The notes under the pieces are model-generated. The model saw nothing but the letters and a program-made list of their open reading frames with translations, was not told the origin of the DNA and ran no database searches. From positions 620,001-684,000 of the forward strand of contig CDRNST010000003.1 of the NCBI GenBank assembly GCA_977016875.1: 64,000 bases of DNA, read 5' to 3'. Of the stretch, positions 1 through 55,025 are shown piece after piece. Within the stretch, counting starts at the first letter, position 1. Each line of letters opens with the position of its first letter. The position numbers and the translations under genes were made by a program. The DNA is from Pavona decussata (taxonomy: Eukaryota).

Positions 1-2
1 TG

Positions 3-143
3 GATGCTGTTCCATTTTCCGAACGTCAATGGGGACATTGGTTGGCAAGAAATGCAATCAATACAAAATCAAAATTGGGACTTGGGGTTCCAAAAAACGT
101 CAAAAGCCGTCGGGTAAAGAGGAAAACTGGCAAGAAGAATTAG
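3..143 (+). CDS. C-terminal part (5'-partial) of a Polinton PLA2X-like ORF
   Basis: Frame 3 reads DAVPFSERQWGHWLARNAINTKSKLGLGVPKNVKSRRVKRKTGKKN* (TAG 141-143). This resembles the C-terminus (...K-x-KLGLG) of the phospholipase-A2-like ORF found next to Polinton integrases. The catalytic part is outside the window. Confidence 0.65.
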   Translation, partial: DAVPFSERQWGHWLARNAINTKSKLGLGVPKNVKSRRVKRKTGKKN

Positions 144-1156
144 CTAATGAGCTGCATAAATCCATAAGACGTAACTTTACTCGGGGGCGTGTTATTGTAA
201 ATAATATTGATGAAATATGGGCTGCTGACCTTGTTGAAATGCAACAATTCAGTAAATGGAATAAAGGTAATAGGTATCTTCTCATGACTATAGATGTTTT
301 CAGTAAATACGGTTGGATTGTTCCATTAAAAGATAAAAAAGGTGAGACCATAACTAAAGCATTTCAAAGCATATTCAAAGAGGGTCGAAAACCAAAGTAT
401 CTGTGGACTGATAAAGGCTCAGAGTTCTACAACAAACATTTCAAAGACTTGCTCAATAAACATAACATTACACTGTATTCGACTGAAAATGAAGAAAAGT
501 CATCAGTGGTGGAAAGGTGGAACCGGACGATTAAAAATAAAATGTGGAAACGATTCACTGCCCAAGGCAATACAATGTATCTGGATATTTTGCCTAAAAT
601 ATTGAAGCAGTATAATAACACTAAACACAGTTCAATAAAAATGACACCGACAAAAGCATCTAAGAAAAAGAATGAAGGAACTGTTTACTTCAATCTTTAT
701 GGCAATTTGAAGCAATTGTCATCCCAAGCAAAATTCCAAGTTGGTGAAAAGGTTAGAATATCAAAGTATAAAAGAAAGCTGTTTGATCGAGGTTATACAG
801 AAAACTGGACAGAAGAGGTCTTCATTATCGATAAAATTCAATACACGAATCCAATCACATACAAACTGAAAGATCTCAATAATGAAGAGATTAAAGGGAG
901 CTTTTATGAACCAGAATTATTGAAAGCTAAACAGGAGATATTCAGAATCAATAAAGTTATCAGGAGAGATTACAAGAAGAAACAAGCTTTGCTAAATTGG
1001 AAAGGATACAATGATGCCTTTAATTCTTGGATCCCAATCAAGGATTTAGTCGATTTAGTCGATGTAAAAATAAATAAGCTCATTTCACGGCCTCACGAAT
1101 ATTCGATAGCGAGTCGATCCAATAAAAAAATCTATTGTTGTGTGCAAGATAAATGA
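29..1156 (+). CDS. Polinton retroviral-type (rve/DDE) integrase with C-terminal chromodomain
   Basis: Motifs LANELHK, IWAADL (D), IDVFSKY, LWTDKGSEF (D), VVERWNRTIK (E), YNNTKHSSIKMTP, VRISK...GYTENWTEE, and chromodomain-like LLNWKGY...NSWIP. The true start is uncertain (see findings). Confidence 0.95.
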   Translation: MGTLVGKKCNQYKIKIGTWGSKKRQKPSGKEENWQEELANELHKSIRRNFTRGRVIVNNIDEIWAADLVEMQQFSKWNKGNRYLLMTIDVFSKYGWIVPLKDKKGETITKAFQSIFKEGRKPKYLWTDKGSEFYNKHFKDLLNKHNITLYSTENEEKSSVVERWNRTIKNKMWKRFTAQGNTMYLDILPKILKQYNNTKHSSIKMTPTKASKKKNEGTVYFNLYGNLKQLSSQAKFQVGEKVRISKYKRKLFDRGYTENWTEEVFIIDKIQYTNPITYKLKDLNNEEIKGSFYEPELLKAKQEIFRINKVIRRDYKKKQALLNWKGYNDAFNSWIPIKDLVDLVDVKINKLISRPHEYSIASRSNKKIYCCVQDK

Positions 1157-1405
1157 TATTCTTACCTCAAAAAGCGTCTACAAACATCAGAACGATGAAA
1201 GTGGAAAAATAAATGTGCAATATATCCCAAAACATGAACGATAAACATGAAAACACAAGCTCTTCACAAAATGGCGACAAAATGGCCGACACGTGTATTA
1301 ACAAACTAGTGTCCAGTCCCCTTTGGGTTGTGTCATCGTGTACTTGCATGAAAACGCATGCGTGTTAATCCAAATCAAGCAATATTACGCAATATACAGA
1401 AAAAT

Positions 1406-1448
1406 AGCACCACAAGTGTAAAAATTTCAGAACTGAGTGTAATATATA
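1406..1448 (+). promoter_or_regulatory. Putative type-3 (U6/7SK-like) RNA Pol III promoter: PSE + TATA
   Basis: GCACCACAAGTGTAAAAAT (1407-1425) resembles the metazoan snRNA PSE. TATATA lies at 1443-1448. Spacing of -66 and -30 places both on a start near 1473. Confidence 0.6.
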
Positions 1449-1471
1449 GGTAATCGGGCCATTGTTATATT

Positions 1472-1779
1472 AGTTCACAAACTCTGGTGAAGCTTTAGGG
1501 TGGTGTCAGTTGGCCCCTGACTGAAACCTGTTTAACGGCTTGTGCAGATGGTGAATTACTGAGTAGTGTGGGATGTCTTCCAGTAGACGGTACCTCCAGG
1601 GTGAGCCCGCTCAGGCCCTACTGGTTTACAGCGGGGTGCTCAGAGTTCGTCCCAGGACTCAACCTCGGTCCCAGAGGTAAACTGGGAAGGGACAGCCGCA
1701 TTTGTCCAGCGGCGGGAAAAAGACCTGGCTGGGGCCAGGCAAGTAAACAGCCAACCGAGCACCCCACGTCTAGGGTTTT
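1472..1779 (+). ncRNA. Putative ~305-nt structured Pol III RNA encoded in the Polinton terminal region (family unknown)
   Basis: GC-rich island with nested helices 1471-78/1551-58, 1506-10/1520-24, 1580-86/1618-24, 1633-41/1757-65, 1662-66/1674-78, 1695-99/1709-13 and 1724-29/1734-39. No internal T4 run; the first TTTT is at 1776-1779. Confidence 0.6.
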
Positions 1780-1978
1780 GTCCATTTTCATGACAAGTCA
1801 CACAACGTCACGCGTGACAGTAACGACACCCAGTCACACAACAACCATAATGATTATTTTTTTCGCCAAATTGGTGTTCAAAAATATTGTATTCATCATT
1901 CAAATCAGCGATTGATGAGTTGGTTGGATTTAATCGATGATTGTTTGTGAGTTGGGGATCAGTTTGGTGTCATTTATG

Positions 1979-2059
1979 AAAAACCTAAATTTAGGTTTTT
2001 GAGAAACCGAGGATAAAAATTTAGGTTTTTAGGTTTTTAGGTTTTTGAGTTTAGGGTTG
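1979..2059. repeat. Subterminal TTTAGGTT repeats and AAAACCTAAATTTAGGTTTT palindrome of the Polinton end
   Basis: Directly visible: about five tttagg(tt) units. Confidence 0.75.
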
Positions 2060-4681
2060 AATTCAAAGGCTGAAATAGTATTTTATGTAGTTATTGGGGT
2101 GAGATAATGTGTGGTTAATGGCGTCTCCGTTGCAGGAGTTAGGGAAAATATTGGATTTAAAAGGATTTGTATGGGATTTTTTATCATTTTTTGAAAAGTG
2201 AGCTGATACCCTCAAACATCTAACTACTTACACTGTGATAGACTTACAATATTCTCTAGATTTGAGACGCATTAAGATTTCAGATTATCCAAATCGAACC
2301 TTTATGTTGTTGATAATATTTTTCCTCCATTAAACTATCAGGTAGCCTTCAGTTTGCTTCCTGTTTCTGCATATGTCTGTCAAGTTTTGTGGAAGAATCT
2401 CCTCAGGAATGTCCCGCAAAATACAGTGATCTTATTTTCAAGGTACTATAAATTTATTGAATTACGTTTTAAAAATGGTAAGCACCAACACATATCTCTA
2501 TCGATAATGTTTTCTTTTTTTTTGAAAATTCCGACGACCCTTTTACAGGCAGACACAATTCGCAACTTTAAAATCAGCCTTTATGGTAGCTCGGCCTCTT
2601 AAAGTTGCAAAAGAAATAGGTAAAGCTAATTTAATATTTCTCAGCTCATCTGACAACTGAAATTCAAATCAAGCGAAATAAGATGACGACCTTTGTAGCT
2701 CTGTTGACACAGTGTCTTAATCGTTATGGTTGAATTTGTGGTTAACTCGGCGAAGATTCATCGATTAGCTGCTTGAGGTTCTTCTTTATTTATTTGAATT
2801 TATTTCCCCGGCACACTGTGAATTTTTTAGTCTCTCTGTATACCTTATCGACTGGAATAAGGAGAACATGCATTTTTTACAATATATTTTTCACTCTAAT
2901 TACTCACCATTTTACTTCCTGATTGTTTAACTGATTCAAAAGAGTGCTTTAGCGATCTTCAGTAGAGTTTGACCGGTTGCTCTCTGTTGGTCCAAACATT
3001 CCAGTAAACTTCCAACCGCTTCAAACCATATGGAGACAGAAAGACCCAGCGCGACGGCATCTGTCAAAGAAAAAGCAAACAAAGTATCATTAGGTAATGC
3101 CGAAAGAGAAAGACGGATTTTTTTTATATCATGTATAATTATGTTTATCTGTGAGTCGTATTCCTGTCGGTTTGTACACGCACATGGCTAAGAGTATTTG
3201 GAACACAGTTTAATTTCTTGCCAGTGGTGAGCAATGCGTGACTGGGCCCCGATTCTGTGCTGTCGACTGGAGGTTTCTGTGCTACGTACGTATACAGTAA
3301 ACGTTTTTCATACTTTGTTTCACAATTTTTCGGGAAGTAGACTTCCCTTAAACTTGCTTGATATACTTAAATTAGGCTGAGGCCAATCATGGCTTACGCA
3401 GCGTACAAATCATTGCGTCACTGGCTTACTGTATATATGACCTAGTAAGAGTTCGAAAATACAGCATTTTACGCTTAAATCCGCAATGATTCTGTTGTGA
3501 GAAACAGCCCGGATCGAGTTCCACACACAATTCTGTAAGATGAAGCAGTTCGCCAATGATATGTGAGAGTTACATGATCCTGAATTGGCGAATATCAGGT
3601 AGCATTTTTGCGGCGAAAATGTGAAACGAACCCTTACCTCTAAATGACCTCCGAATTGTTCCTTCTAGTCATGATGTAAACCCCTGATAATATTCATTCC
3701 TCGTGAGTAAGAGTTGGTCGATGACCTACGCTTCGAATAGTTCAATAATTATTTATGACTCTTGTTTCGTGTTCCCACCAGTTTGCATTGATATCCATTA
3801 TCTTCAGTTGTTCCAACTGACATCCGCTGTGACAAACGTTCATGTGATATTTGTTCTCCATATCCAATGAACTGCATCATTTTCGTTTCTATGTGTTTTA
3901 TTTCTTAAACAAACGAAATGTAATTTTGACCACTACTTTGATGACAAACTTATATCAAATGGGAAGTGTGTTTAGCCAGAACGACAATCATCTAGTTTTC
4001 ATCATAGCGTGTTGTTTTCTTTCGATAAAAGAACTCTCTTATGACAACAGCGTATGTACGAACGAGCTTTCGTAACAAAACCTCCCAAACAAATGTGCAT
4101 GGACAAACAGTTAAACATTCCCAGCAATTTGGCGAATCAATTTTTGTTGGCAAAAGATCTGATTTATTAATAGCGCAGAATACACAGAGAATATGAATAG
4201 TCCCTTGTCCGATTGCGAAGCGAATATTGTCGCTTGATATCTTGCCTAGTATTAACTATTTTTTGTTTTGCTTTTGACGTTGCGAGAGGATCTGATCATG
4301 AGCCGAATAACGTGTTAATTTTATAATGAATACAGCGCTTCTTAATTATCTGCTACCAAAATATTACGTCCATAAAATCGGATTCCAAACAGTGGTTTGA
4401 TAAGTCTTACTTGCAAGCATGTACTGCATTTTTGGCCTTCTTCCTATCAAACATTTTAAATCGAATCTTGCCCAATCCCGCCATCATTTTGAAACAAAGA
4501 GAATAAGTCGAATAACAGTGAACATTTTTGTGTAAACTTTAATCGGAAGTGATTTTTCATTCCCGAGGCAACTACTCTGGATAGGACCTTATTAAACAAA
4601 TGTAAATCATTCCCATGCACTGCTTTCATCCTCGTATTCACAATGTTTGGCCAGTTTCTGCAGGCGTGTGATGGAAGTTGT

Positions 4682-8487: not shown

Positions 8488-9740
8488 GCGACGTTTTGTG
8501 TGTCTTGTGGTGCAAAGGCGCAAGGAAATTACGAGGCAAGTCGCAAAGTAATTGCCTAATGTAACACGACGTTTAAGGGTACATGTTTTGCGTCATTTTT
8601 AAATTTAGCGCCACGCAATCTCACAACTAAAGGAAGACGAGCTTCTTGTCTGAGACTTGGGACCGAGCGCGAGGCGATCCCGCGATCCCGATCACTTCCA
8701 CCAGTGACGTCATTTTCTGCCGCGCGCCAAGGAGCACTTTTGACGCGGCTGTAATCCAGCGTATTTTGTTAACCTTTGTCCCGTAATGAAACACTGGAAA
8801 TTAAGATGATTTCTTTTCTCACTTATAAACAATAGTGACGTTATTACAGCACTATCAATCCTCACAAAGGTAACGACTGATAGGATATTTGCCACACCAA
8901 ATTAAAAGTGCCGCATCAAACTAAGTCAGACGTCGCTCTTTTATTTGCTGGCCTGTATCAGAGGCTTTTGGCCAAGCGCAAAGCGCGCGACATCGATGGG
9001 CGAGGCATGATACGCATGCGCGGAGCCCTTTGCTAAATAAACGTCTGTAATGCAGGATACTCTTTTGCCGGACTTAATTGATCAGTTAGGCTTGTCACAT
9101 GAATGTGTAGTATAGTAGCGTCCGAATCAGGACTTACTGGATGAATGGAAATCTGCCACTTTTATAAACCAATCATTTTTTTCACTTACGACAGAAATAG
9201 TACGTCCAGTCAGGAGCGGAAGCGCGGTCATGATGCATGCAACATTTGGTTCAACATGCGTTCAGCACTTTGTTGAGCTGAATGTTGGAAGCGTTTGAAC
9301 AGGTCATCCAACATTAATGAAAGCCCGTAAAAATGTTGAAAGCGGCTTGTAGAAAGCGTGTTGAATCAATTTCAGAAATCAGTTTTAACTTTCATTCAAC
9401 ATCCATAAAACATTTCCTTTGTTCTAGATTGGTGTTGAAGCCGTCTGAACACTCCATTCAAGATTTGGCCAACATTTGCCCAACATCCGTTCAACTTTTG
9501 TTGAAGATTAGGGATTTCAGTAATTTCTTCTCTCCTCTGTTGGAAAAAAAACATTGACAGCAATTTGGTGATGTTTCTAGGCTTTATTATTTAACTGATA
9601 TGAGACTGAACTTCAAACCTATGTGCATGACTTCCTCAGAATTAGCACTGCAGTGTTCTACATATTTCTAGTTATTTTCTACAGCTTTCTTTAAAAGACT
9701 TCTTTTAAAAGAAAAGTCCAGTTGATCACGTGTCATGTGT

Positions 9741-10104
9741 TTACTGCTGAGCTTTTGGCACTTCTTCAATGAAGATCCGGGACATTGTACCCCAGCCTGT
9801 GACTGCGTCAGCACTCTTTCGACCAGTTGTACACTTTCCAACCCAGAATCCCACTCGGACCTTTCTCTTGTGAATGTTATTACAGTGTCCTTCAATGTGG
9901 CGGTGACGGTGAAGACTGTGCCTCCTTCCATGCAACATGTAGAATGCACCATCAATAGACCCAGGAGAGCTACACTCGGCGCCATTGAACTTGAAATACC
10001 AGCGGCTACAACAGTCGTCGCAGTGGGCAACCCTGAGGTCACCGGCAAAGTAGACATGGAGGGCAGTTTCTGTGTACTTCTTCAGAAATTCACAGCGCTG
10101 TTAC

Positions 10105-10136
<32 letters not shown>

Positions 10137-11175
10137 ATAATAATGAAGTAACATGACGAAACGTTTCTGATAAAATCATCTGTAACTGAAGGAAAATGCC
10201 AAATCAAGAGACGACAAGAATTGTGACGTGGAGGGAATGTCTGTGCACTTCTTCTTGAATTCACAGCGCTGTTAAATATGAATGGATTTGATTCAACCTG
10301 AACTGGGTTTCCGAGAAAAAATTACATCCTTAAAATAGAGATGATGCGATTTATAACTTGTTTTTATGTTCCTTTTGGGATAATTTCTTTTCAAAGTAGT
10401 AAAGGTGTCACAAAAAACACAAAATTCACCATGAAAATATGAAAATATAAGTCACTCACATATATCTCGCCTGAATCTCTGGCGTCCCCCTTTTTCCAGG
10501 TGCATTCCTTCCAGTTCAAGTGTGAAGACAGCCGAGGAGTTCCACTGTCACCTTTGTCCCCTAGCTGCCCTTTTTGGCCGGATGGACCCTGGATCCCAGG
10601 TTCTCCCTTTGCTCCTTTCTTTCCTTCCGCGCCAGGTGATCCCTGGGGTCCAGTCTTTCCCGGGCTGCCGATGTTTCCTTTTGCTCCATCACGTCCATCA
10701 CGGCCAGGTGCCCCAGGTGATCCCGGCATGCCATGCATACCGGGTTGTCCATTTGTGCCGGGTTGTCCACCACAACAAGGAAGGTACTGAGATGGATACA
10801 ACAATTAAATCATTTTTTTGAATTTTTTGCAATTTTCATGCGTTTTCGCGCGACTTGTTTGCAGCGCTGAATTTTCGTCTTGCTGCTAAGTTGAATTTGA
10901 GTAATTATACGATTTTCATTTCCACACTCTAGCCCATCAACTTTATCTTAGTCGCATTTTAGTAATTTTGGGAATTTTCTAGAATATATTTAATTCTACG
11001 TGTCTTTTAGGCCTTCGGTGTATATCGAACTAATAAGGAAGCTGCTATTTCAGTATAATGAACTCACCCTGTAGTCACGTGGTTTGCTAGTGTTTTTGTT
11101 GTTCGTCGCAGAGCAGAAAGTTATGAGCAGCAAAATAACAACACGTAACATGATGGTCAGCAGAAAGTGCGCCAT
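9741..11175 (-). CDS. CTHRC1: CTHRC1-like secreted collagen-repeat protein, copy 1 (intact, 263 aa)
   Basis: Exons 11175-11068 (signal peptide MAHFLLTIMLRVVILLLITFCSA), 10786-10460 (26 Gly-X-Y triplets + NWKECTW) and 10097-9741 (CEFLKKYTETALHVYFAG..CCSRWYFKFNGAECSSPGSIDG..HRHRHIEGHC..VGFWVGKC..TGW..SRIFIEEV). Both introns are phase-0 GT-AG. An upstream acceptor at 11190 implies a non-coding first exon. Confidence 0.92.
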
Positions 11176-14100
11176 TGATATCCTCTAACCTGTGAAAACT
11201 GGAAAGCAATGAAATGTCCGAATTATTGATAATGACAAGTAAAATAATCTAATATTTGTTAGCTTATAAAATAAACTAACAAGATACAAAATAGTTATTG
11301 ACATAAGATATTCACTTAAAAAAATAAATACGATTGAAATAAAATCCATTAAGTTAGTGAAGAAACATTAATTAGAAAATTCATTCCTCTTACTTCATGT
11401 ACAAGTGGTGAAACGTAATAAGATTGGATCTAGTTTCCTATATTTCTAACAAAACGATATAAAGCTACTTTATCTTGGCCCGTTAATTCGTTAATTCCCA
11501 GAAAGGAATTGTACTAAATCTCACCTGCGCTCGTAAGACCTATCGATTATTCCTACCTTACTCTTGCTCCTGTGGAAACAATATGATGCCCACTTGTCTA
11601 CAGGCAGCCAATTTATCTTTCTCTCCTCATAGTGACTCAACAACTTGCACGTTAAAACAAGTTGATTACCTAAGAAATTTAAAAATACGACGAGCATTCT
11701 TATTGGTTAGTGCATTTTGCAAGGGCATCCTGTTTATTTTAATAATGTTCAGGATAAATCTGGTTCAACTGAACAAAACTGATTACGTGGCGAGGAGACT
11801 AGGACAACTTGGAAATACAAACAAGATAGCTGTCGTCATTCAAAATATTACAGAATGTTGCTAAATCAAGTCAAATCTTCTGAGACAACTATTAAACCCA
11901 ATCTTCAAACTATAGTTTTAGTCGAAACTTCAATTAAGAGAATATAGAAAAAATAGTAAGCACAATTCCCGTTTTTTTTTATCATTAAATTTAGTAGGGA
12001 CGAGGACCAACTGGTTGATAAACTGAAATGATTCGTCAGTTATGATGATGCTTGCAGATTCATCAGTATTTTCCAAATAAATAAACTTAGTTTTAAATCA
12101 AGTTTCCTTCTCCAGTTTTCAATAAATCGCACTGAGCACTCGATTTTCACTATGATTTATGGAAGGAGAACGCCCCCAAATAATTGGTTGTTGCCAAAGT
12201 GAGCTCTTTTATCTGAGATTAAAACTTGCTTTCGAACCCTAATTTCAAGATGATTTTCTCTGTAAGGACCAAAATTAGTTAATTTTTCTTCTAGTACTGG
12301 TCATACCAGTCATTAAGAAAAACAAATCTCCATTTACCTTTAACGTAACTTTGATCCTGGGTACCTGATCCAAGTGGAAACCAAAATCTGAACAGTGGAA
12401 GAGAATGACGAGCGTCAATTAATATTGATTGATCATCAAAAGATTGAAACGCATTACCAGAAACAAAGAAGAATTCATTTTTACATCATGAACGTTACAC
12501 TTGCCAGCTAAATAGCTTCATAATAATTATACAGTATTCCTTTTCTTCCATAATTAACCAATTACTAACTTACATTTGGTCATTAAATATCAAAGAACAA
12601 CCTCTGTGTCATACGAACTGAACGCATTTTTGAAATGGTCGGTTAGTTTCGCTAAAACCTCAATTGATGATGTACGACTTTTAATATGAACGAACTTAAG
12701 TTCCGTTCCGTTCTGTATGCTGTATCTTTAAGAGATATTCAGTAAATTTCAAGCCAGAGGACGTGACCCAACCGTACTTTTCAGAAAGCATGGTTTCGTA
12801 GATATAGTTCTGTTTCTGTGGTGGGCTTCACTGCTTTACGTCAAGAAATCGACGAAAATTGTCCTTTGAATTGATTTTTTAAAACTGAGGAACTACGTGG
12901 CTAGACGAATTTTTTGAATTATCGTTAGATGAAATTTAAAAATATCATAATCAGCTTAATGCCTGGGTTCACGGTCTACAGTGAGTGAAAACCTAAAGCT
13001 CAATAAAAGAAGAAAGCAGCTTTTGTTAGGTTTGCCAGTACAATGGGATTTCCCATATATAAACGCAACCAAAATTAAGTGTACTCACGCTATGTCTTTT
13101 TGTTGCTCTGTACAGCAGAAAAAAGTCTGCTTCTCTCTCTTGTTTACTAAACTCTTGGTTCTTTTGCTAACAATGTTCTCGTCAGAACAGGTTTGAAAAA
13201 CAATTAGTTCAACAGAATGGACCGGCTATGATTTGTAACAACATACTAAGGAGAACAGCTAAAATTACGTCAATAAGTGAAACTTATTTGTTGCCATTAC
13301 TTTACTTCGCGAAAGCTCTAATATCCTCTCACTAATGTCATCAATATAATTTGCGTTCCCAGCCGATTTCATTGTCGCTCTCATTTATAAATTATGACAA
13401 TGAACTTTGCACGTCCACTCGACTCTTATGTCCTTTTGGCTTAACACACATTTTATTGCAGATTTATATTGAATTTCATAATCAAACCAGTTAAATACGT
13501 GTTGTTATATATTTTCCTCGGATTTTCAAATCGAGTCTTCCAGTCTCTGTTTTGTTCACTCTTTGTTTCTTTCAATTCTTTTTCGAGCTGCGATATTTGC
13601 ACAAAATGCATAGGATGACTTACAATTTTTTTCACCTTTTTGTGTAACATTACAATCTCAACAATAGTTCAGTCAAACTCAGACATATTGTTCAGACATA
13701 ATTCCCAATGTTAATCCAGGTAGAAATAGCCTTAATAGAGGTCAATCTTGCACTTTATATGCGACATTAAGATCAGAAGGTGATTTTTATTATGCTTAAA
13801 AGACAACATAAATCTTTGTCAACTCATCAAACCTAAGAAAATTCAATTGAGTGAAGTAAGATGTAACAGTCGCTGAATCGTGGAGATTGGAACACGCGTT
13901 TCATACCAAAGTTTTCGATTTCGCTTGGAACCCACCCATGTAAAGTTTGATTTCATCCCAGGACGCTGTGCCATTTTTTATCCTCTATATATCAGTGATT
14001 TACCCTATAAAAGATATATTTAATTACTGGAAAAATTGAGAAAGATGCATTGTTTGCAATATATTTTACAGTCGAATTACTAACCATTTTCCCATCGAGT

Positions 14101-17100
14101 TTGCCCGCATTCTGCTGATGCACACTTTGAATCACCTTCATTCAAATGAAGAACTTAGACAACCAGTGCGGTAACATCTTGAAAAGAAAAAGAAAAAGAA
14201 ATATCAATATGTAATAATAATGGCCAAAGAAAGAGGTAACATATTAAAATCCGTGTTTGTGCACGGACGGCTTATAGGGCCATTATATTTGCATACGCTC
14301 TTTCAGAGCTTTTTAGTCTCTTTTATCAAAATAATTTTTACGGGAACAGACTGGGAACATTGGGGCTGAGATTGGCGAAAATGTTACTTACTCTCATGCA
14401 GTTAAAGTCCATACCAAGACTTATTAGAACGGTGGCTTTTTTCCCCTTTTTTTCAGTCCAAATTAGCTCCAAATTTGGAAAGTAAAATTAAAAAATAAAT
14501 AAATAAATAAATAAAATAAGAGGTGGCAGTAATCCGAGTAGATGAACAAATCATTGTAGACTCCGCCGTAATGTAACATTTTAATAACTGCACTCTTTAT
14601 GAAATGTTATGCCTCCTTCAGACTTTGGGATAATTATTTTAAGGCGCCTTTCTATTCTCCTTGTGACTATCACGTTTTCAACGAAAAAATGTGCGAGAAA
14701 TCTACGAGAGATTCTGTGGATTTGCGCACAAAATATACTGATATCACTTTTCAGATACCGTCGGGGCACTCGACTCAGTATTTCATTGTTTCCAGTGTTC
14801 CCAGATCATTTTGTGCTGCTCAGATATATTTGTGTAAGCTAATACACATTGATCTCTTTTGATACTTTAGCTCGTGGAAGTTTAAGTTGCAAAACGTTTT
14901 AGGGAACAAAAGTTTAAATCCCGAATTTACGTTTGCTGTTGTTTGGTTTGCGCTGATATTTTTTTCACGTTTTTAGCAACATATTTGCTCTTTTTATAAC
15001 GAAAGAAATTACTTGTGTTAGGAATTGTTGAGCAGAAATTTTGCAGAAGTAAACTGCAGATTTACTTTAGGTCTTAATCCAAATTCAGTTCTGAGTCGAT
15101 TGAGGCCTTCCAAACAGATACCCAGCGAAATGTACCGCGTGCCCTTGTACCGTGAATTGATGATTTACGTTTTAACCGAGGACAAACACCAACGTTATAA
15201 TGCGATCAATCATGTTTTATAACCCAAAACAGCGGCAAAATTCCCAAAATCAGGCATAATTCTTCAGAATAGGGACCAGCAGATAAAGCCTCCAAGATGG
15301 GTCCGTTTACTTTTTTCATGAAAAAGAAACATATAAAGTCGACTTCATATTTTAATTCGACAGGCGTCTGACTTTGGAAAGGTTAATCTAGCGAAGTAAG
15401 ATGACGCACTTTGTCATTTTGATCTTACGGTATCTGAATCTTCTCGATTGGAACATGCATTTCAGTGCAAAGATTGCGTTTCTCCTTGAAACCACGCTTG
15501 AAGTTAGATTTATTTCGCCAACGCACAATGGGTTGCTCATTCTTTTTGTATACTTTAAACAATAGTTGAATGGAAAAAGAAGATTGATACATTGTTTACA
15601 ATATATTTTGTGCTCGAATTACTGACCATTGTAACTTCCGGCTTGATGCCCTGTTTCAACCGGTTTCCCTGGCGGTCTGTTGGTACAAATGTTGAATCAT
15701 TTTTTAAAAACCAAATCAAGAACGAAACAATGAGTGTGATGGCATCTGTTAAAGGAAAGGTGAACGAAATGTTAACATGTAATGGCTAAAGAATAATCAT
15801 GCAGATTTAGATGTCGTATATAAATTATGTTTACTCCTGTGTCGTGCGGTCGGTTTTAAGGTCGGTTTGTATTTCCTGTCGAAATGCTCAAATGGTCAAC
15901 GAAGATTTGCAATACAACTGAAAAAATAACAGTACGCTACTTAGTAGTGCACAACACAAGAACTAGCCATGATTCTATGTTGCGAAACCTCTACTGAACT
16001 CGCTTTAAGAAGAACTAAATCGATGTAAGCCAATCCGGCATGCATTTACGTAGCTTACAAATCGTTGAGTCACGAACTGAATGATTTTCAAAAACAGACA
16101 TAATTCTTAATAATTAAGACGGGTAGACAGAGCCTTCAAGATGCATTCGCCTGCACTTTTCATAAAAAATAAACGTATAAAGTATAGTAGACTAAGTTAA
16201 ATATTTTCAACTCATCTGACTGTATTTTGTAATTTTGCCCATCTGAGTATATACTTCCCTTGAACTCGCTTTAAGAAGTAATGGATCCTCTATAAGCCAA
16301 TCAATCATTTAGGTAGCTTACAAATCGCCGATTGTTGAGTCGGCTAACTGACTGACCTTAATAATATGTGAAATACAACTATAATATTTTTCAATTTAGA
16401 TCCACTCGGCTTCCGGTGGGACAACTGAATAGACGGGATCTTTGATACCGAAACTGTGAAGTGTAAAAGCGCCCGCCACAATGTACATCTGACATCATCT
16501 AACTTTAGAAGTTTTAGGAAAACAATTGGTGAAAGAGAAAAAGTGAACTTACCTCTAAATATCTTCTGAATTTTCTTTACTTATAAATCAGCGGCTAAAC
16601 ATTCCAACATTGTTGTAGAACATTTTACATATACCCTTGTTGGACCAACAAAAAAATGTTTCTCAAGCGACCATCTAAATGTTCTAACACCGTTGAACCA
16701 ATAAATGCCGTAATAATTTCGATGATAAGCTACGCTTCGAACACAGAAAATAATGATTCAGTTCAGTGATTATTTATGACGCCAGTTTCGTGTTCCCACC
16801 AGTTTGATATTCATCTCGCATCCATTGTTTTCAATTGTTCATTGCTGACATTTGAGGCAAGCGTTTTTGGTGACATTTTTCTCTTTATCCAATGAACAGC
16901 TGATTTGCGTTTCTGTATGTGTTTTCTTAAACAAACAATGTAGCACTGAATCTAGTGTTTATCATAGAATGATATTTACTTAACATAGCGAATTCTCCTT
17001 CGGCAACGACACGTAAATTAATAGTCTCACATTTACGAATGAGTTCCTGTAATCAAAACTGCCAAATAAAAATGTTTCAAAAACTCTTAGGCCCTACCAG

Positions 17101-19573
17101 TGATTTCGAAATTGTGTTGCCCTATGATTTATGAACGCAGTTGAGCATATTACTGGAAAAGCGGCGTATTTTTCGAAAGTCCATCAGAATTTGGGCCGAA
17201 TTTTAGATAAACTACAGCTGCGTGGTTTGCACACAGTCACCGTAAAGTATTTCCTTCCCGGATTTTCTTCGACCTTATCCTGGGAAAAATATGGAGGCTT
17301 CTTCTCAAGCCCTTGTGTACACAGCTAAAACAAATCGGGGCCAAACGCAGCGAGATAGACGTTTATTTTGTGGTCAGCCAGATAGCAATATTGTGTGCGC
17401 CGCTGTTTAATTCTATTATTTGACAAGCGATGAGTTTGTACAAATAAATACAAAGTTACAATAGAAAGCATACTTTTGCACGACGAAGGCACTAAAGTGA
17501 TTCTGACTTGCAAACACTACATATATTCCATACCCAGGCCTCTTCCTGCCTGACCATAATCTTAGTTATGTTTCTCGCAATATTAGAAAAAAAAAAAAAG
17601 AACAGTGCTCGTTATAAAAAGAAAAAAACGATAATAGTTTACATGGAGTATCTTGTTTTGCTAGCGTACATCCTTCCCGTGGGCCGGAGGGTCCTCTAAG
17701 ACAGCAACAATTGTACTCAGACGCATATTCACTGCTGTTGTATCGTAAAAATTAGAATCTAGTCGCCCTCGAGTGTGTTTCAAGAGAAGACGAAGACTTC
17801 TTCCACGGGCAAGGACAGTTCACTTGTCTGTGAATCAAGAGCATAAGGTGGGTACAGTAGCCCATAATTGTCAGATGGCTATTACTGAAAATAATCAGTT
17901 CCTGGATCCTCTTCTTTTTTTCCTCTTCTTATTTTATTTTAGGAATAGCCACTCGAGAATGAAGAACACTTAAGAAGGGGGAGGGGGAAGGGCATTTAAA
18001 TCGTTCCGAGGGATTTTCCCCTCACTGGAAGGGTATATAATTTTAGTGTGTTCTTGTTTACGTTCCGGCAAAATTTTTTCTTTCTCGCGAAACTGTCTTT
18101 CGGAAAAGTCTACTCCTGCGCTGCTACAGTAACACTATTTGATACAGAAACCCGTTTGAGTATGTCTACTTAACGCCGCTTCCCCTTTTTTAAAAAGGAA
18201 TATTGCATTTAAAAAATACCGTACAGAAGTGCCATAAGATTTTTTTAAGTTCTCGTTTTATAACGACTTTATTAGTTTCTGATCAGTTGTCTCCACTAGG
18301 AATAAATTCAATCCCCGAAAAACTCACAAGCATCGAAGAAATGCATCCAAAACTTAAAAAACTTCATGAAAAAAAGACTTCATGCCCCACGATATTTTCC
18401 GGATTTAATAACAAAAATCAGCTGTTTTTGAGGAAGAAACAGTGAGAAAAGCTTTGCATAGAATAACAAAACTGAAGAGGCCTGGGAACAACATCTGGGA
18501 GGGAGAAGGCATCGCTATACTCGTTGGTGTACGCATCTAATTTGAAAGATGTTTCCCCGCCCCTCCACCCATAAAAACAAAACTGTTAGCGTTTCACCGT
18601 TAGTGCAAAGAAGAGAGTAGCCTTCGTCTTCTCTCCCTCCCATCCCATCGCCTGAACATGATGGACATGCGATAGAAGTGATTTTTTTTTTTGTTGCTTT
18701 CCTTTGTAAAAACTAAGAACCGTACAAATATCATATGCACGAGCTATAATTGTAACTGTTCCTTAGCAGCCAATACTTAGACAGGGCTTAGACAGGCATT
18801 GTGTCGCGATCCAAAAATTGCAAAACAGATTTAAAAAAAAAAATCCAGCAGCCTGAAATAGATATCTGGAGTTGGGAGTTGGCGACTTATAGTTTTCTTA
18901 TTTCTAAACGCGTACGCAACAAGTGGTTTAGTTGTTAAGGTATGATTGAGAATGGACTGAGATGCAGGAGTGATGCAAGTTCATGAGGAAAAGAGATACG
19001 TCATAGAAGCCAACGCGCACGTAACTCAAACCGCAAAGCAGTCGTATGACACTCTTAATATTTTTCAAGGTAATACATTATTTTTGCTTTCCTAACAATC
19101 CGATAAACGTTGCCACTTGAGTCATCTACATGTTGTGTCTCGTGACATAGACTTTTAGTCATCAGATTTGAAAGACACCGCAAAAAACATATCTATTTTA
19201 TTCTTTAGAAGTTTTCATTTTGATTATGTTAGGATCAGGTAATAAAACATTCTTGCTCCCAGTGCAGTGAAATCTATAACTGTTGCTGTAAAGATTTAGG
19301 ATTTTAGTAATTTCTCTGAAGCTGCTCTGTATTGAAAAGAATCTGACACTGAAGTTTGGCAATACTCTTTAACAGCAAGTTAACCGGCATCAGAGGATTG
19401 CAATTGGTGTATAAAACAAATTACAGCAGCCATTTGTTAACATTCCTGGACTTTATTGCTCAACTGATACAAACAAAACTTAAAGCCTACTGCTATGATT
19501 TCCACTGAATCAGCACTGCAGTGTTCTTGTACATGATTTTACTCATTTTCTACAGTTTTGTTTAAAATATTTA

Positions 19574-20817
19574 TTAAAATGAAAAGTCCAGTTGATCACA
19601 TGTGACGTGTTTACTGCTGAGCTTTTGGCACCTCTTCGATGAAGATCCGTGACATTGAATGCCAACCAGTGTATGCGTCAGCACGCTTGTGGCCAGTGGT
19701 ACACTTTCCAACCCAGAATCCCACTCGCACCCTTCCCTTTTGAATTTTATTACAGTGACCTTCAATGTGGCGGTGACGGTAAAGACTGTGCCTCCTTCCA
19801 TGCCACATGAAGAATGCACCATCAATAGACCCAGGAGAACTGCACTCGGCGCCATTGAACTTGAAATACTAGCGGCTACAGCAGTTGTCACAGATTTGGA
19901 TCCTGAGGTTACCAGCAAAGTAGACATGGAGGGCACAGTGCCTGTGTACTTCTTCATGAATTCGCAGTGCTGTTAAAAAATGGTTTTGAATGAATAAAAA
20001 CTGGGAATTATAACTATTATTATCTGCGAGGAGAAATGACAAAGATACAAAATTAGAGATTGTGGGATTTATAATTTTTTTTGTGTTTTTATCAAGATAT
20101 TAAAGGTGTGACCATAAACACTTAATTTATCATGAAATGATCATGATGGAAAGTCACTCACATATATCTCGCCTGAATCTCTGCCATCCTCCTTTTTCCA
20201 GGTGCACTCCTTCCAGTTCATGTGTGAAGACAGCCGAGGAGTTCCACTGTCACCTTTGTCCCCTCGCTGTCCTTTTTGGCCGGCAGGACCCTGGATCCCA
20301 GGTTCTCCCTTTGCTCCTTTCTTTCCTTCCGCACCAGATGGTCCTTGGGGTCCAGTCTTTCCCGGGCTGCCCAGGGTTCCTTTGGCTCCATCACGGCCAG
20401 GTGACCCAGGAAATCCCGGGACACATGCCATGTATGTCCAAGTCCCGGATTGTCCCCCATTACAAAATGAAGGAGGCTGGTAGAATGCAGAAACAAGAAT
20501 GCTATTAGAGCCTTTTCGGAATATGATTCAAGCCGTTACAACTGTTCCTGTCCCTAAGTAATCTAACGTTCATGTCTAAGTGAATCCATTTTTTTTTTTG
20601 AAATTGAAATCCATTTAGGTTATTTACGATTCTCTTTACTGTCCGTTGGCACATGATTCAGAAATGCTTTTATTACTCTAGATTTTTTTAGGCAGCTGCT
20701 ATTTTAGCTTGATAAACTCACCTTGTCACGTGATTTACTGTTTCTGTTGTCCTTTGCAGAGCACAAGGTGACGAGTAACATGATAGTCAGTAGATAGATT
20801 ATACGAGATCGGGCCAT
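19574..20817 (-). pseudogene. CTHRC1: CTHRC1-like copy 2, frameshifted in last exon
   Basis: Exons 20817-20722, 20476-20162 and 19969-19611 (359 nt vs 357 in the other copies). A 2-nt insertion lies at ~19934-19937, and TGG>TAG in the native frame at 19869-19871. The shifted frame stays open to 19574. Confidence 0.85.
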
Positions 20818-23800
20818 CGATATTCTCTGAGCTGTAAAAACTGTAAAAAGAATAGTAACAAAATTTATATTTATTATGGTCAACCTAAGTTCAACTTGAA
20901 TAACTATCGCATTTCATGAGATGAACTGAATTGCTTCTAAATAGTCTCGTTGGTTAAATTCATAGATGTTAATTAATGTAAGCCCTATTCATCTTCATAA
21001 CTGATATTTAGCGATCAAGCGCCTACCTTAATCCTGCGATGGTGGAAGCAAATGATACTCTCTACAAAACGGTTGACCGTTTTACCTCTGCCCTGGTGGT
21101 TGACATTTTCACGTTAAAACAAGTTTACGAGTTTATTACGGATCAGATGTAAAAATACGTCGCTCGTTCTTATTGGTTAGAGAATTTACAATGTTCCAAT
21201 CATATGACTTTTAACAGTTCAAGTCTGTTGGGTTTATTTAAATAATGGTCGGGTTAAAACTAGTTTTAATGCTATGATTACGTAGTAAGCCAGAATAGGA
21301 CGAACAAAGTTTCACAAGTTCGTGAACGTATTTGAATGTAAATTATTGAACTTTAATTATTAATTATTGTGCTAGTGGCTTCCAAATCCGTATCAGGATC
21401 CCTATCTCTAAGTTTGTAGTTTAAACAAAGGAATTCTCTCTTTTCAAGTTCTAGAGTGAGGAAATGAAAAAATGACCCAATAATGCTTCATTCGTGACAT
21501 TTAAGCAAGACGTACATTACTTAATAAGTAAATGGTCAATTAATCATCGTGCATGGAAAAAGTTACAAGAACGCAGTAGTTTATAATTTGAAATGATCAG
21601 CAATTGTGAGACCGAATAAGTGTATCGGAAATTAACAAAACGTTCGTGTATCATTAAATTTTATTCACTCACCTTTGAAGTTATGTGCCTCAGAAGCTGG
21701 GCGGAAACAAAAATCTTAAAAATGAAAGAGAAAATTAGGTTCACTTCTTTGCAAGAAGCACGATAAAATGCAAAAAAGGACAACATTGCTTCTTCTCACA
21801 ATTTCAGCCCTACACTGTCCAAAAGCGAAACACTGCGTACACTGGCATCCCTCAGTTTGGCTTAGCGACGCTCCCCTCATCTCTAATGAAATCAAATTCA
21901 AACTCCATACAGCTTGAGTTAATGGTATATTAGTTAATGGGTCATTGCGTTCTGTACAAAGTACCGGATTTCTCGATCATCTTTCAACAGAAGGGAAGAA
22001 AAGATGATATCACTCTGTTTTCCAATCCAAAACCTACAATGGATTTTTTCTGTAAAGGCTCGATAGGGATTTATACACACACGCATCAAAGCAGACCGTG
22101 TGTCATATGGTCTTCAATGCTTTATCTACAGGCAGAAAATTTCACGAGGATATATTTCTCAAATTGTCGAAGCTCACATAATCACCATACTCAAAGTTCA
22201 TATTTGGAAATACTGCATTTCGCACATGTAAATAACTTACCTTTGAGCTGTGACTAAAGCTTGCTTTGTCTACCGTGAACGAGAGACCAAAACCTAAATA
22301 TTAGAAAATAGATTAATTGCTATGTTTACCCATAAAATGATCAAAGAATAAAAAAGCAAACGGTATACTCACACCACCAATGTTGCCGTTTCTCTTCGCA
22401 GCTAACAAAGATACTTCTTCCTCTTGTTATCCTAACTTTCGTCTCCTCTGCTTTTCAAATTTCTCGTCAGAACAAGTTTCTTGAACAATATACATATTGA
22501 TTATCTTTTTTCTAACTAACAATGCTATTTGCTAGAGTCAATTTGGTCCAACGCCGATTCGTCCAATCAAACGACTCGTTTTATTTGGTTATCTTATCTC
22601 TGCTTCACACAATCGTCATGAATTTTGTAAAAGCTTTTCTTTTCTCCCTCCACCAAAAATTCCTTATCCTTCCGAGCATTACTAGTAACTGGAAAATAAA
22701 AATAAAATGTCCGTTGCCGTCCGTCGTTACCGATTTTTGGTGCCCTAATTTTGTCAAATCTCACAAGCTTTGATATGTGAACTACAATAAGCTGCATGAG
22801 ATGACAAGATGTACATGTGTTTGTCTTAAGCCTATGAACAATCCATTTTTTTCAATTCAGGTTGTTTCTGGTAGATATCCAACAGAGTTAAAGTTACTGT
22901 AAATACTGTATAGTAGAAATCTCGCGAAGAAGAGAAGTTTGATCCTGGACCTAGAAACGTGTTAAGAAAATCAAACCGATTTGAATTTTTACATTACTAA
23001 AAAGGCATTTTTACCTCAGTTGAAGAATACCGCAGCATTTGACTTGTGTGTTCGAACGTTGACAAAAGGCTACAACCTACCTAGACAAAAGAGACAAACT
23101 GCTCAGGCCAATTATTCACACGAACCGATTAATCGGGCCGATTTGGCCCAATTTGACAAAGAAAATTAGCGAACAGTCAAATTTGTTTTAATACGAAAGG
23201 GTAAAGAAATCGGTCGACAAATTGTAACGTGTAAATTAACCCATGCGGCGAATAAAGGTGCTAAGCTGATCGATAAATCGATTTGTGTAAATCAGTCTTT
23301 TTCAATTTATAGCACAACTAGAACAGAAAAGGCATCATTCTGAATTATTTGGAGATCGGAAAGCTTCAATCTATCCCCTTCCGTCGATGGTTTCTTTTAG
23401 AAAGAATGTTCGGAGCAGAACAAGAACGATTCGTTTTTTGGAATATTAGCGGTCGAAAAGTTTTTCGCCGGCGACGAGTAATTCAGTGTGAGTATGAAAA
23501 AAAGAAATTGAATATCTGGATTATGGAGTATTTTATGATTATTAAATTAAGTAGTTACTTATATAGTTTACGTTATTTTACATAAATTAAAAAAATAAAA
23601 GTTTAATTTCACGTGTCGCATTAATCTCAACAACTCGATGCTTTCATGCTTTGCTAAGTCTGGGTTTGTACACAGCAAAACACTCGACTGCATAATGAAG
23701 TGTTTTAGAAAACAGTATTTATATTACTACAAAGTGCACTGTGATCGACTTCTAATCCCCTTTTTACTTGAGGCAAATTAAACTTCAGATCTTCCAAAAA

Positions 23801-51546: not shown

Positions 51547-52537
51547 CTGCTTTCGGAAAACAACCTAGGGGAAGAAGTGGAAAAGGGCAGATATAAGAAA
51601 TCTCAATTTCGCAGAAAAATTGAGTTGTTTGCATTAGCATCAAAGGCCACAATTATTTTGCACTATTCTCATCTATGTGCTCATTTTTTTTTTTTGCGAG
51701 AAAACATAAACGCGGAATTTCACGCTTTGTCGTTTGCCGCAAACACGATTCTAAGCTCGAGCAACTATTTTCAACCCGAAGATTAGGAAAGCAGGTGATA
51801 CTGACTATGAAGAAAAATGATGTGGATTCAATTGGCATCTGATGCTTATAATAGTTGTATGGTTTCAGTGGTGTGGAATCAAAAGTGGATTCTTGGTTTT
51901 GGGTATGTGCTTATTTTTTGTGATGACTTCAAGCGATAATCTTAATTTAATTTAAGCGATAAATCTGCTACCATTAATTGTTGCAGATCAGACAAGTTCA
52001 CCTCTTGTTTCTTACTTATTTAATGGAATTTGTGTTCGCAATTGCTATTACAATGTAACTCTGTCATTTTGATTATTTGAAAAAGCATTAACAAATCTTT
52101 TTACATTTTTTTTACATCTCTCAACTGAGAAGCAACGAATCGCATGTTTACATTGGCACTCAACGTAAGAATACCTTGAATATTAAAATGGTTCATGTTT
52201 GCAAGCGATTTCATGTCGATCTTACAGTTTTTAAAATGTTTATTCTTATACAGTATCCCATTATTCCGCTCACCTAAAGAATTAAGCAAGTTTTTTTTCA
52301 GAAAAGCAAGCGGCTAAGGAATCAGGACATCTCTTAGATACAGATCTGATCTGTCAAAAGTGCTTGCGGACAACTCTTACAGTACAAGTAAACAAAAGGC
52401 AAATGCCGTCGAGGTAAAAGAGCACAGATTTTCATTTCAAATTTAGATTCTCGAGAGGCCATTACACCTCTGTGGCCGCTGCCTTGCATGATAGTAGACA
52501 TATCTTCAGGCTCAAAGTGCAAATTAACAAGACTTAA

Positions 52538-52742
52538 GGGACCGATCGTTTATTACGTCCTGGGGGGGGGGGGGGGGTGGTTTTCTAAAAAAATCGAGTG
52601 TATGAAAATTCCCCCCCCCCCCCCCCATGGTTGGCAGAAATTAGGCGAAATTCAAAAAAAAAAAAAAAAAATCACAAAAAAGAGCCCGTTTAAAAAAACT
52701 ACCCCCCCCCCCCCCCATAGGACGTAATGAACGATCGGTCCC
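52538..52742. mobile_element. Tourist/PIF-Harbinger-like MITE inserted in the right TIR of the large element
   Basis: TIRs GGGACCGATCGTTTATTACGTCCT / AGGACGTAATGAACGATCGGTCCC, TAA TSD (52535-37 and 52743-45), internal poly-G/poly-C tracts. Confidence 0.9.
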
Positions 52743-53808
52743 TAAGTTTATCTTATGGATTTTGGCCTAATTCGAGTTAATTAGCTTCCATTTTGTCGCT
52801 AATCTTGTGTTATTTGAGCCGAACACATTGCAAAAGTTCTCCGATTTTCTCAGAGGGAAGCGTTGCGAGTCCGAGCTTGGAACTTGGCATGGTGAATGTT
52901 TAGTAACTATATCTTAAGGCTGTAAAGTAAAATTATCGAAAACTGAGGTACCAGGAACACTTTTGTGTCGTTAAATATTACCTATATTTCGCCGCTATTT
53001 TTAGCGCTCTACAAAGGTGGTTTTAAAGTGCTCGCTGGAATCACAAAATGAATAGATTTGAAAATGTTGAGTAGTGGACAATAAACAAGAATAGTTTTTC
53101 GTAGTTTGTGTAAAGTTTGACTTCAACTGAAGTTATTTTAAGCATTTGGCAGTGCTTCGTCCGCGCACCTTATTTTGAACCTTCAGTTGGCCGAAAAACC
53201 GCACTTTGACCGCAAATTTTTGCGAATCTCTCAAAATTAAAAAGTCGCTGGAACTTTTAAATATGATTTTTGAAAGTAGTTCGCCAAAGGGTATTTTTGG
53301 ACCAAATATGAGCGATACGCCAAATTGGTCGTTGACGGCGAATTCTTGATCCTTACCGGCAGATTTGAAAGACACCGCGAAAAACTTAAATCTATTTTGT
53401 TCGTTAGAAGTTTTCATTTTGACTATGCTAGGATCAGGTATTAACATATTCTTGCTCCCAGTGCAGTGAAATCTATAACTGTTGCTGTAAAGATTTAGGA
53501 TTTCAGTTATTTCTTTGGAGCTGCTCTGTTTTGAAAAGAATCTGACACTGGAGTTTGGCAATACTCTTTAACATTAAGTTAACCCATCAGAGGATTGAAA
53601 TTGGTATATGAAAACAAATTACAGTAGCCATTTGTTAACATTCCTGGACTTTATTTCTCAACTGATATAGACTGAACTTCAAATTTACTGCCATGAGCTC
53701 CGCTCAATCAGCACTGTAGTGTTCTTCTGCATCTCTTTTTACTAATTTTCTACAGTTTTTTGAAATATTTATTAAAATGAAAAGTCCAGGTGATCACGTG
53801 TGACGTGT

Positions 53809-55025
53809 TTACTGCTGAGCTTTTGGCACTTCTTCAATGAAGATCCGAGACATTGTACCCCAGCCTGTGTCTGCGTCAGTACTCTTTTGGCCAGTGGTAC
53901 ACTTTCCAACCCAGAATCCCACTCGCACCTTTCCCTTATGAATGTTGTTACAGTGACCTTCAATGTGGCGGTGACGGTGAAGATTGTGGTTCCTCCCAGT
54001 CTGCATGTAGAATGCACCATCAATAGACCCAGGGGAACTGCACTCGGCGCCATTGAACTTGAAATACCAGCGGTTACAGCAGTTGTTACAGCCATGAATC
54101 CTGAGGTTACCAGCAAAGTAGACATGGAGGGCAGTGTCTGTGTACTTCTTCATGAATTCGCAGTGCTGTTAAAAAAAATCAGTGGTTTTGAATGAATATG
54201 AACTGGGAATTATAACTATTATTATCTGCGAGGAGAACTGACAAAGATACAAAATTAGAGATTGCGGGATTAATAAGGTTTTTTATGTTCTTATCAAGGT
54301 AGTAAAGGTGTGACAAGAAACACTTTATTTATCATGAAATGATGGAAAGCCACTCACATATATTTCGCCTGAATCTCTGTTGTCCCTTTTTTTCCAGGCT
54401 CACTCCTTCCAAGACAGCCGAGGAATTCCACTGTCACCTTTGTCCCCTTGCTGTCCCTTTTGGCCGCCAGCACCCCGGACCCCAGGTTCTCCCTTTGCTC
54501 CCTTCTTTCCTTCCGCACCAGGTGGTCCCTGTGGTCCAGTCTTTCCCGGGCTGCCCAGGGTTCCTTTGGCTCCATCACGTCCATCACGGCCAGGTGCCCC
54601 AGGGAATCCCGGGACACATGCCATGTATGTCCAAGTCCCGGATTGTCCCCCATTGCAAAATGAAGGAGGCTGGTAGGATGTAAAAGAAAAAAAAACCCCA
54701 AAAAACAGAGCGCTATTAGCGCTTTTTCGGAAAATAATTCAAGCCGTTACAACTGTTCCTGTCCCTAAGTAATCTACGTTCATGTCTAAGTGAATATACT
54801 TTCTTTTTGGAAATTAAAATTCGGTTAGGTGATTTCGATTCTCTTTACTGTCCGTTGGCACATGACTCAAAAATGCTTTTATTACTCCAGATTTTTTAGG
54901 CAGCTGCTATTTTAGCTTGATAAACTCACCTTGTCACGTGATTTACTGCTGCTGTTGTCCTTTGCCGAGCACAAGGTGACGAGTAACATGATAGTCAGTG
55001 GATAGATTATAAGAGATCGCGCCAT
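53809..55025 (-). pseudogene. CTHRC1: CTHRC1-like copy 4 with in-frame nonsense codon
   Basis: Exons 55025-54930, 54669-54358 (12-nt deletion removing SHMN; TGC>TGA at 54400-54402) and 54165-53809 (intact). Confidence 0.85.

Follow-up and report, generated by a model that had tools for sequence, protein, structure and literature searches.

The right end of a Polinton in the genome of Pavona decussata carries a compact module that is best read, with a probability of about 0.35, as a self-contained non-coding RNA unit of ~305–315 nt with an external promoter, probably of the RNA polymerase III (Pol III) type, belonging to a young subfamily of coral Polintons. The module occupies positions 1355–1790 of the window, which is a stretch of 64,000 nt without N from contig CDRNST010000003.1 (forward strand, 620,001–684,000). 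It consists of an AT-rich promoter-like stretch (1355–1455, + strand), which holds a putative proximal sequence element (PSE) and a TATA motif, a GC-rich non-coding block (1472–1779, + strand), which is the candidate RNA on grounds of composition, folds and conservation, and two runs of four T residues (T4 runs; 1776–1779 and 1785–1788, + strand), which are candidate Pol III terminators. The earlier note on this DNA had described a 19-mer at 1407–1425, TATATA at 1443–1448, the GC-rich block and the two T4 runs, and all of these coordinates are correct. Copies of the element were compared in a set of 22 loci of the host genome, all reached via protein look-ups and cited below by their locus labels.

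The element that hosts the module is a Polinton (polintovirus) of ~19.7 kb, represented by L001 and L014 on one contig. Both termini of the L001/L014 element end in ...CTAACTACT and the 6-bp duplication GGTAGC is found on both of its sides. Only the right end of an element falls in the window, and the region of the polymerase-like gene lies outside it. The right terminal inverted repeat (TIR) of the window element extends over 1892–2228 and ends in ...CTAACTACT as well; the left end of L014 matches 1892–2062 in inverted orientation, and bases 2229–2234, directly after the right TIR, would be the target-site duplication. The TIR length differs among copies, that of L001 measuring ~215 nt and those of the window and L004 ~340 nt. 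The outer TIR (window 1961–2228 and its relatives) is made of short AGGTTTTT / AACCGAGGAT-type repeats whose number is variable. The proposal that the module lies inside a Polinton, in the interval between the integrase and the terminus, is thus borne out by the integrase, the A32 ATPase, the TIRs and the 6-bp duplication.

The window opens within the integrase gene, of which it holds the 3′ part (1–1156, + strand; ORF 29–1156) with the rve core and the chromodomain (Pfam rve, E = 5.9e-11; Chromo, E = 3.7e-4). The frame is open across the whole part within the window, and the tail of the protein is longer than in the relatives, whose gene ends near window position 1070. The integrase has 6165 homologues, the best of which are 94–96% identical and the named ones of which come from the stony coral Oculina patagonica. 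In the L017 integrase, a 260-nt tract equivalent to window 641–900 has 20 private differences, compared with 0–5 in the other copies, which suggests recombination with a more distant lineage. An A32-type packaging ATPase (Pox_A32) is found in all relatives, and the copies further encode VLTF3-like, PLA2-like and HNH proteins and a tail-fibre-like protein of 830 aa; no capsid proteins are recognised by Pfam in the element. A protein of 1263–1309 aa gives a weak but collinear alignment with the DNA_pol_B_2 protein of the relative L009 (E = 7e-6 and 2e-4), and the 1263-aa protein of the window's subfamily has no Pfam DNA_pol_B_2 match and no PDB match; weakly aligned as it is, it may represent a divergent protein-primed PolB-like protein. 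The gene order depends on the subfamily, since the large polymerase-like gene is downstream of the integrase in L007–L012, whereas in the window's subfamily (L013–L016) it occupies the other end of the element. The window's element conforms to the published descriptions of stony-coral polintoviruses and adintoviruses (PMC11131425, PMC8502044), with which it shares the PolB-like protein, rve integrase, A32/FtsK-type ATPase, VLTF3-like and PLA2-like proteins and TIRs; the two papers say nothing of non-coding RNA genes or of Pol III.

The remainder of the window holds other repeated structures. At 44177–53362, inverted repeats of ~620 nt (94–97% complementary) enclose ~8 kb with two ORFs, one of 371 aa with an ALOG domain (E = 5.7e-23) and one of 539 aa without a Pfam match; the unit resembles a mobile element of the DIRS or Crypton type. 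Near its right arm, at 52537–52743, a 41-nt inverted repeat consists of a run of 14–16 G residues and the complementary run, with its halves 125 nt apart. Dispersed multi-kb units are present in 3–5 copies at 9600–10800, 19200–23400, 33000–37100 and 53400–57700, with 64–95% identity and a spacing of ~10–20 kb, suggesting a duplicated gene or a repeat cluster. Another pair of units lies at ~15.5–17 kb and 38.9–40.3 kb and has 94–97% identity.

Within the element, the module is single-copy, unique sequence located ~115 bp inside the right TIR. A second copy at the left TIR, which the earlier note had suggested looking for, is absent; the left end repeats only the equivalent of window 1892–2062, and this limited match rules out that the module is a part of the TIR or a left-end duplicate. 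Eight distinct loci carry the module (the window, L001, L004, L006, L017, L019, L020 and L022), three of which also occur in a second assembly, either identical over the compared stretch or listed there as a further place. The clade that bears it has integrases at least ~88% identical to that of the window, and the module is absent from L003, whose integrase is 94% identical in protein, from L007 (82%) and from L008–L012. In L007–L012, protein genes follow the integrase. In L003, ~260 bp of other sequence replaces window 1352–1987 and the TIR is a symmetric one of 717 nt, which includes the homologue of window 1052–1351. The same locus has two facing element ends (11013–11729 and 15890–16616) that are 4.2 kb apart, with 717-nt arms that are 97–99% complementary. 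In the window's subfamily, the non-coding stretch that follows the integrase (1071–1351), whose homologue is the inner part of the L003-type TIR, is restricted to the right end. When the module-less relatives were searched with a covariance model of the block's 3′ domain, no remote version of it emerged, and neither the 64 kb window nor ~420 kb of loci nor the ORF matches in 5.8 billion proteins contained the module outside Polintons. Judging from this distribution, the module is apparently an acquisition of one young subfamily.

Two decayed copies illustrate how the module can be lost. In one, the whole module is gone through a single deletion between 10-nt direct repeats, and in the other there are three deletions in the block and one downstream of it. 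A nested transposon insertion was considered for the module and rejected: L003 shares sequence beyond the left boundary of the module, and the module-less copy is therefore better read as a later deletion.

Seven copies were aligned from the integrase to the TIR (window 1–2000), and the longest invariant run of this alignment is the 101 nt of the promoter-like stretch, 1355–1455. The second-longest, of 82 nt, is located at 1124–1205. The putative PSE is the 19-mer at 1407–1425, which occupies positions −65 to −47 relative to the candidate start and is found a single time in the window, and TATATA at 1443–1448 precedes position 1472 by 24–29 nt. The TATA motif, the putative PSE and the two T4 runs show no variation across the module-bearing copies. 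Among the 22 loci, the pattern of putative PSE plus TATA is confined to those that bear the module, with a single occurrence in each. On its + strand, the window has 0.66 TATAWAW motifs per kb, and it is therefore moderately unlikely that a TATA motif falls 24–29 nt before the composition boundary by chance, with the reservation that the start itself is partly defined from the TATA motif. A BLAST comparison of the module with the rest of one element revealed no second promoter copy and no antisense target longer than 11–13 nt; the upstream motif is unique in this one complete element, and thus does not serve the element's genes as a common promoter. With respect to the host, an Rfam search of the window and of ~290 kb of related loci detected no snRNA genes, and a literature search returned no cnidarian PSE.

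The block at 1472–1779 differs sharply from its surroundings, with a G+C content of 57% compared with ~33% in the flanks and the element. It does not represent a CpG island, given that its observed/expected CpG ratio is 0.46 (0.63 for the element and 0.92 for the whole window). None of the indels among copies is a multiple of three and the block is therefore not coding, in agreement with the earlier view of it. A protein-coding exon is likewise ruled out, the candidate being an ORF of 115 aa that has no Pfam match and whose frame is not kept among copies; this spurious ORF has five ORF matches in 5.8 billion proteins, all at the same Polinton position. Searches with Rfam 15 covered U6, U6atac, 7SK, RNase P, MRP, SRP, Y, vault and telomerase RNAs, VA RNA and ribozymes. 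At the gathering score nothing in the 64 kb window matches these families, and the lone match on the window and 15 loci is an unrelated tRNA in a host flank; with E values up to 10 allowed on 1200–2000, nothing appears at E < 1 and the best matches are at chance level. ARAGORN finds no tRNA-like element. The impression that the block has no hallmarks of known small RNAs accordingly holds for the Rfam families.

The predicted folding of the block is less uniform than its composition. The block as a whole has a minimum free energy (MFE) of −116.1 kcal/mol, which is close to that of dinucleotide shuffles (z = −0.86; −0.82 for the minus strand). Lower energies than in shuffles are found for two sub-domains, a 5′ hairpin domain at 1472–1558 (+ strand; z = −2.76 on the + strand and −0.89 on the − strand) and a multi-branched 3′ domain at 1632–1770 (+ strand), which is closed by a helix of 9 bp (z = −3.36 on + and −3.86 on −); their bounds were picked from the MFE structure afterwards and the z values of −2.76 and −3.36 are therefore inflated. 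The description of the block as heavily self-complementary thus stands for the two sub-domains and fails for the block taken whole, and the claim that G-U pairs in the stems favour the + strand stands for the 5′ domain only, the 3′ domain being slightly better on the opposite strand. RNAalifold and pair counts show no compensatory change among the 99 predicted pairs, because the copies are 96–99% alike and give the comparison no power. In five of these pairs one partner varies and the pairing is preserved, five are disrupted in part of the copies, and changes at paired sites of the block keep the pairing about as often as expected by chance. The 3′ domain has all of its indels and most of its substitutions in predicted loops or linkers. 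The two changes within its internal hairpin stems each convert G-U to A-U, and the remaining change at a paired site, seen in a single copy, disrupts the closing helix at its outermost pair. This bias toward loops and linkers would favour a structure but is at most suggestive, as the changes are clustered.

The right boundary of the block coincides with the two T4 runs, which are kept in all copies (as T5 in one). Apart from them, 1400–1900 has a single run of at least four T residues, at 1857–1863. The earlier remark that no T4 run occurs before 1776–1779 is true and yet uninformative, as 64% of shuffles of 1472–1775 are likewise without TTTT. Strand preference is indicated by the minus strand, which has an internal T5 within the block (A5 at 1717–1721 on the + strand), and therefore the + strand is favoured for Pol III. 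Beyond the T4 runs, two 11-nt direct repeats (1796–1806 and 1832–1842) and a perfect 12-nt palindrome (1807–1818), which adjoins the first repeat, may constitute a protein-binding site. In L019, exactly one repeat interval of 1796–1842 is deleted.

The pattern of divergence among the seven copies gives information on the forces that act on the right end. The percentages of variable columns at integrase codon positions 1, 2 and 3 are 9.6, 8.1 and 20.3%, a bias which shows that selection acted on the copies as they diverged, and that they did so as replicating lineages and not as dead DNA. In the block 5.6% of columns are variable (16 of 285), in 1352–1471 5.8%, and in the preceding non-coding DNA 9.4%. 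The difference between the block and integrase third positions is significant (p = 4e-8), and when a recombinant-looking tract is removed third positions are at 14.3%, still above the block (p = 8e-4); the block thus varies 2.5–3.6 times less than third codon positions. Compared with neighbouring non-coding DNA, the block is not significantly more conserved (p = 0.13), and the non-coding right end 1071–1990 as a whole has a constraint about equal to that of first and second codon positions. The pairwise distances of the module and of the integrase disagree, for example between L001 and L019, so the low divergence may in part be due to recombination and to a more recent common ancestor of the module.

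A different reading, conceivable if doubtful, takes the module to be a passenger: a piece of DNA, perhaps a host small-RNA gene together with its promoter, would have been captured once by an ancestor of the subfamily and would have no role for the element, and its low divergence would reflect recent capture and spread by recombination. Its confinement to the clade of closely related integrases, its absence from L003 and L007–L012, its loss or damage in the two decayed copies, the incongruent distances and a composition foreign to the element are all as expected from such a capture. However, a passenger is not expected to contain the longest invariant run of the whole alignment, no copy has turned up away from the Polinton context in the window, the loci or the protein collection, and the CpG depletion of the block is nearer to that of the element than to that of the whole window. 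A cis-acting DNA signal in place of an RNA gene, such as a one-ended packaging or replication-accessory region or a platform for protein binding, is unlikely and nevertheless accounts for several features. The module lies close to one TIR only, the element encodes an A32-type packaging ATPase, the constraint extends over the whole right end and beyond the block alone, and the palindrome and direct repeats at 1796–1842 stand next to it. The adenovirus packaging domain is likewise unique sequence just inside one inverted terminal repeat, and it consists of repeated AT-rich motifs; the block here, in contrast, is GC-rich and without internal repeats, so that no repeated short motif is seen in it. 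L003 moreover has a different sequence of ~260 bp at this place and a symmetric TIR, and a DNA signal leaves unexplained why the TATA motif and the T runs stand exactly at the two composition boundaries of the block.

A further alternative concerns the polymerase. The TATA motif and the start context at 1470–1476 are also suited to a Pol II promoter of the TATA-plus-initiator kind, and therefore Pol II is possible beside the favoured Pol III. Were Pol II to read the unit from the initiator-like position 1472, the product would be an outward non-coding RNA that runs through the right TIR, or the stretch would be a regulatory or outward-reading promoter; we regard this as quite improbable. It would fit the canonical TATA 24–29 nt before the A at 1472, the pyrimidine-pyrimidine-A context and the 101 invariant nt upstream, and coral polintoviruses express their protein genes from units of the Pol II type (PMC11131425). 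Yet no conserved ORF follows, with indels that break every frame, no poly(A) signal is seen between 1779 and the terminus, the sharp end of the block coincides with two conserved T4 runs, and the upstream motif is absent elsewhere in the one complete element checked.

From the arrangement of these features we infer transcription, polymerase and function of the candidate RNA unit as follows. The TATA motif 24–29 nt before a purine start at 1472–1473 and the element at about −65 to −47 would recruit Pol III to a gene-external, U6/7SK-like promoter, and the candidate transcript would end at the T4 runs at 1776–1788. The resulting RNA, if abundant and structured, might then act on a host RNA-binding or RNA-sensing protein while the element is expressed. 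That the RNA would target a host protein, as adenovirus VA RNAs and herpesvirus EBER and HSUR RNAs do, is a weakly held guess drawn by analogy.

The closest cellular parallels are the type-3 Pol III genes (U6, 7SK, RNase P and MRP), which share with the candidate a TATA at about −30, an element at about −55 and an end at a T4 run. The 7SK, RNase P and MRP RNAs resemble it also in size (~300 nt), and in both cases no requirement is visible inside the gene. The candidate differs from these genes in that it has no Rfam match and lies inside a mobile, virus-like element, and its PSE is only putative. Among viruses, adenoviruses likewise combine a small Pol III-type unit with linear dsDNA, inverted terminal repeats, protein priming and a related capsid and packaging module. 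The adenovirus VA RNAs are ~160 nt in length and have internal A/B boxes; the candidate, in contrast, has an external promoter, no tRNA-like element and no Rfam match to VA RNA, and its promoter type is putative. The EBERs of EBV and the HSURs of herpesvirus saimiri are similar to the candidate as virus-encoded non-coding RNAs with upstream promoters. They are abundant, and their expression needs upstream snRNA-type or TATA-like elements; the HSURs are Pol II RNAs of the Sm class and the EBERs also carry internal boxes. Both come from unrelated viruses, are unrelated RNAs and have no Rfam match to the candidate.

Polintons and polintoviruses are seen as standing near the ancestors of adenoviruses and of other eukaryotic dsDNA viruses, and to our knowledge they have been described through their protein genes only. 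No description of an RNA gene in a Polinton was found in the literature searched, full text included. The fullest form of the proposal is that a polintovirus of a stony-coral-type host has its own Pol III gene of ~305 nt with an external promoter, belonging to no known family and playing a VA/EBER-like role, which would be the first known non-coding RNA gene of a Polinton and the first known use of the host's type-3 Pol III machinery by a virus-like element of an early-branching animal; in this form the proposal is tentative and on balance doubtful. If it is true, the module would be the first RNA gene reported in a Polinton and would indicate that such elements use small RNAs too. It would also provide a compact candidate for a cnidarian Pol III promoter, and a handle on how Polintons meet the RNA sensing or silencing of their cnidarian hosts.
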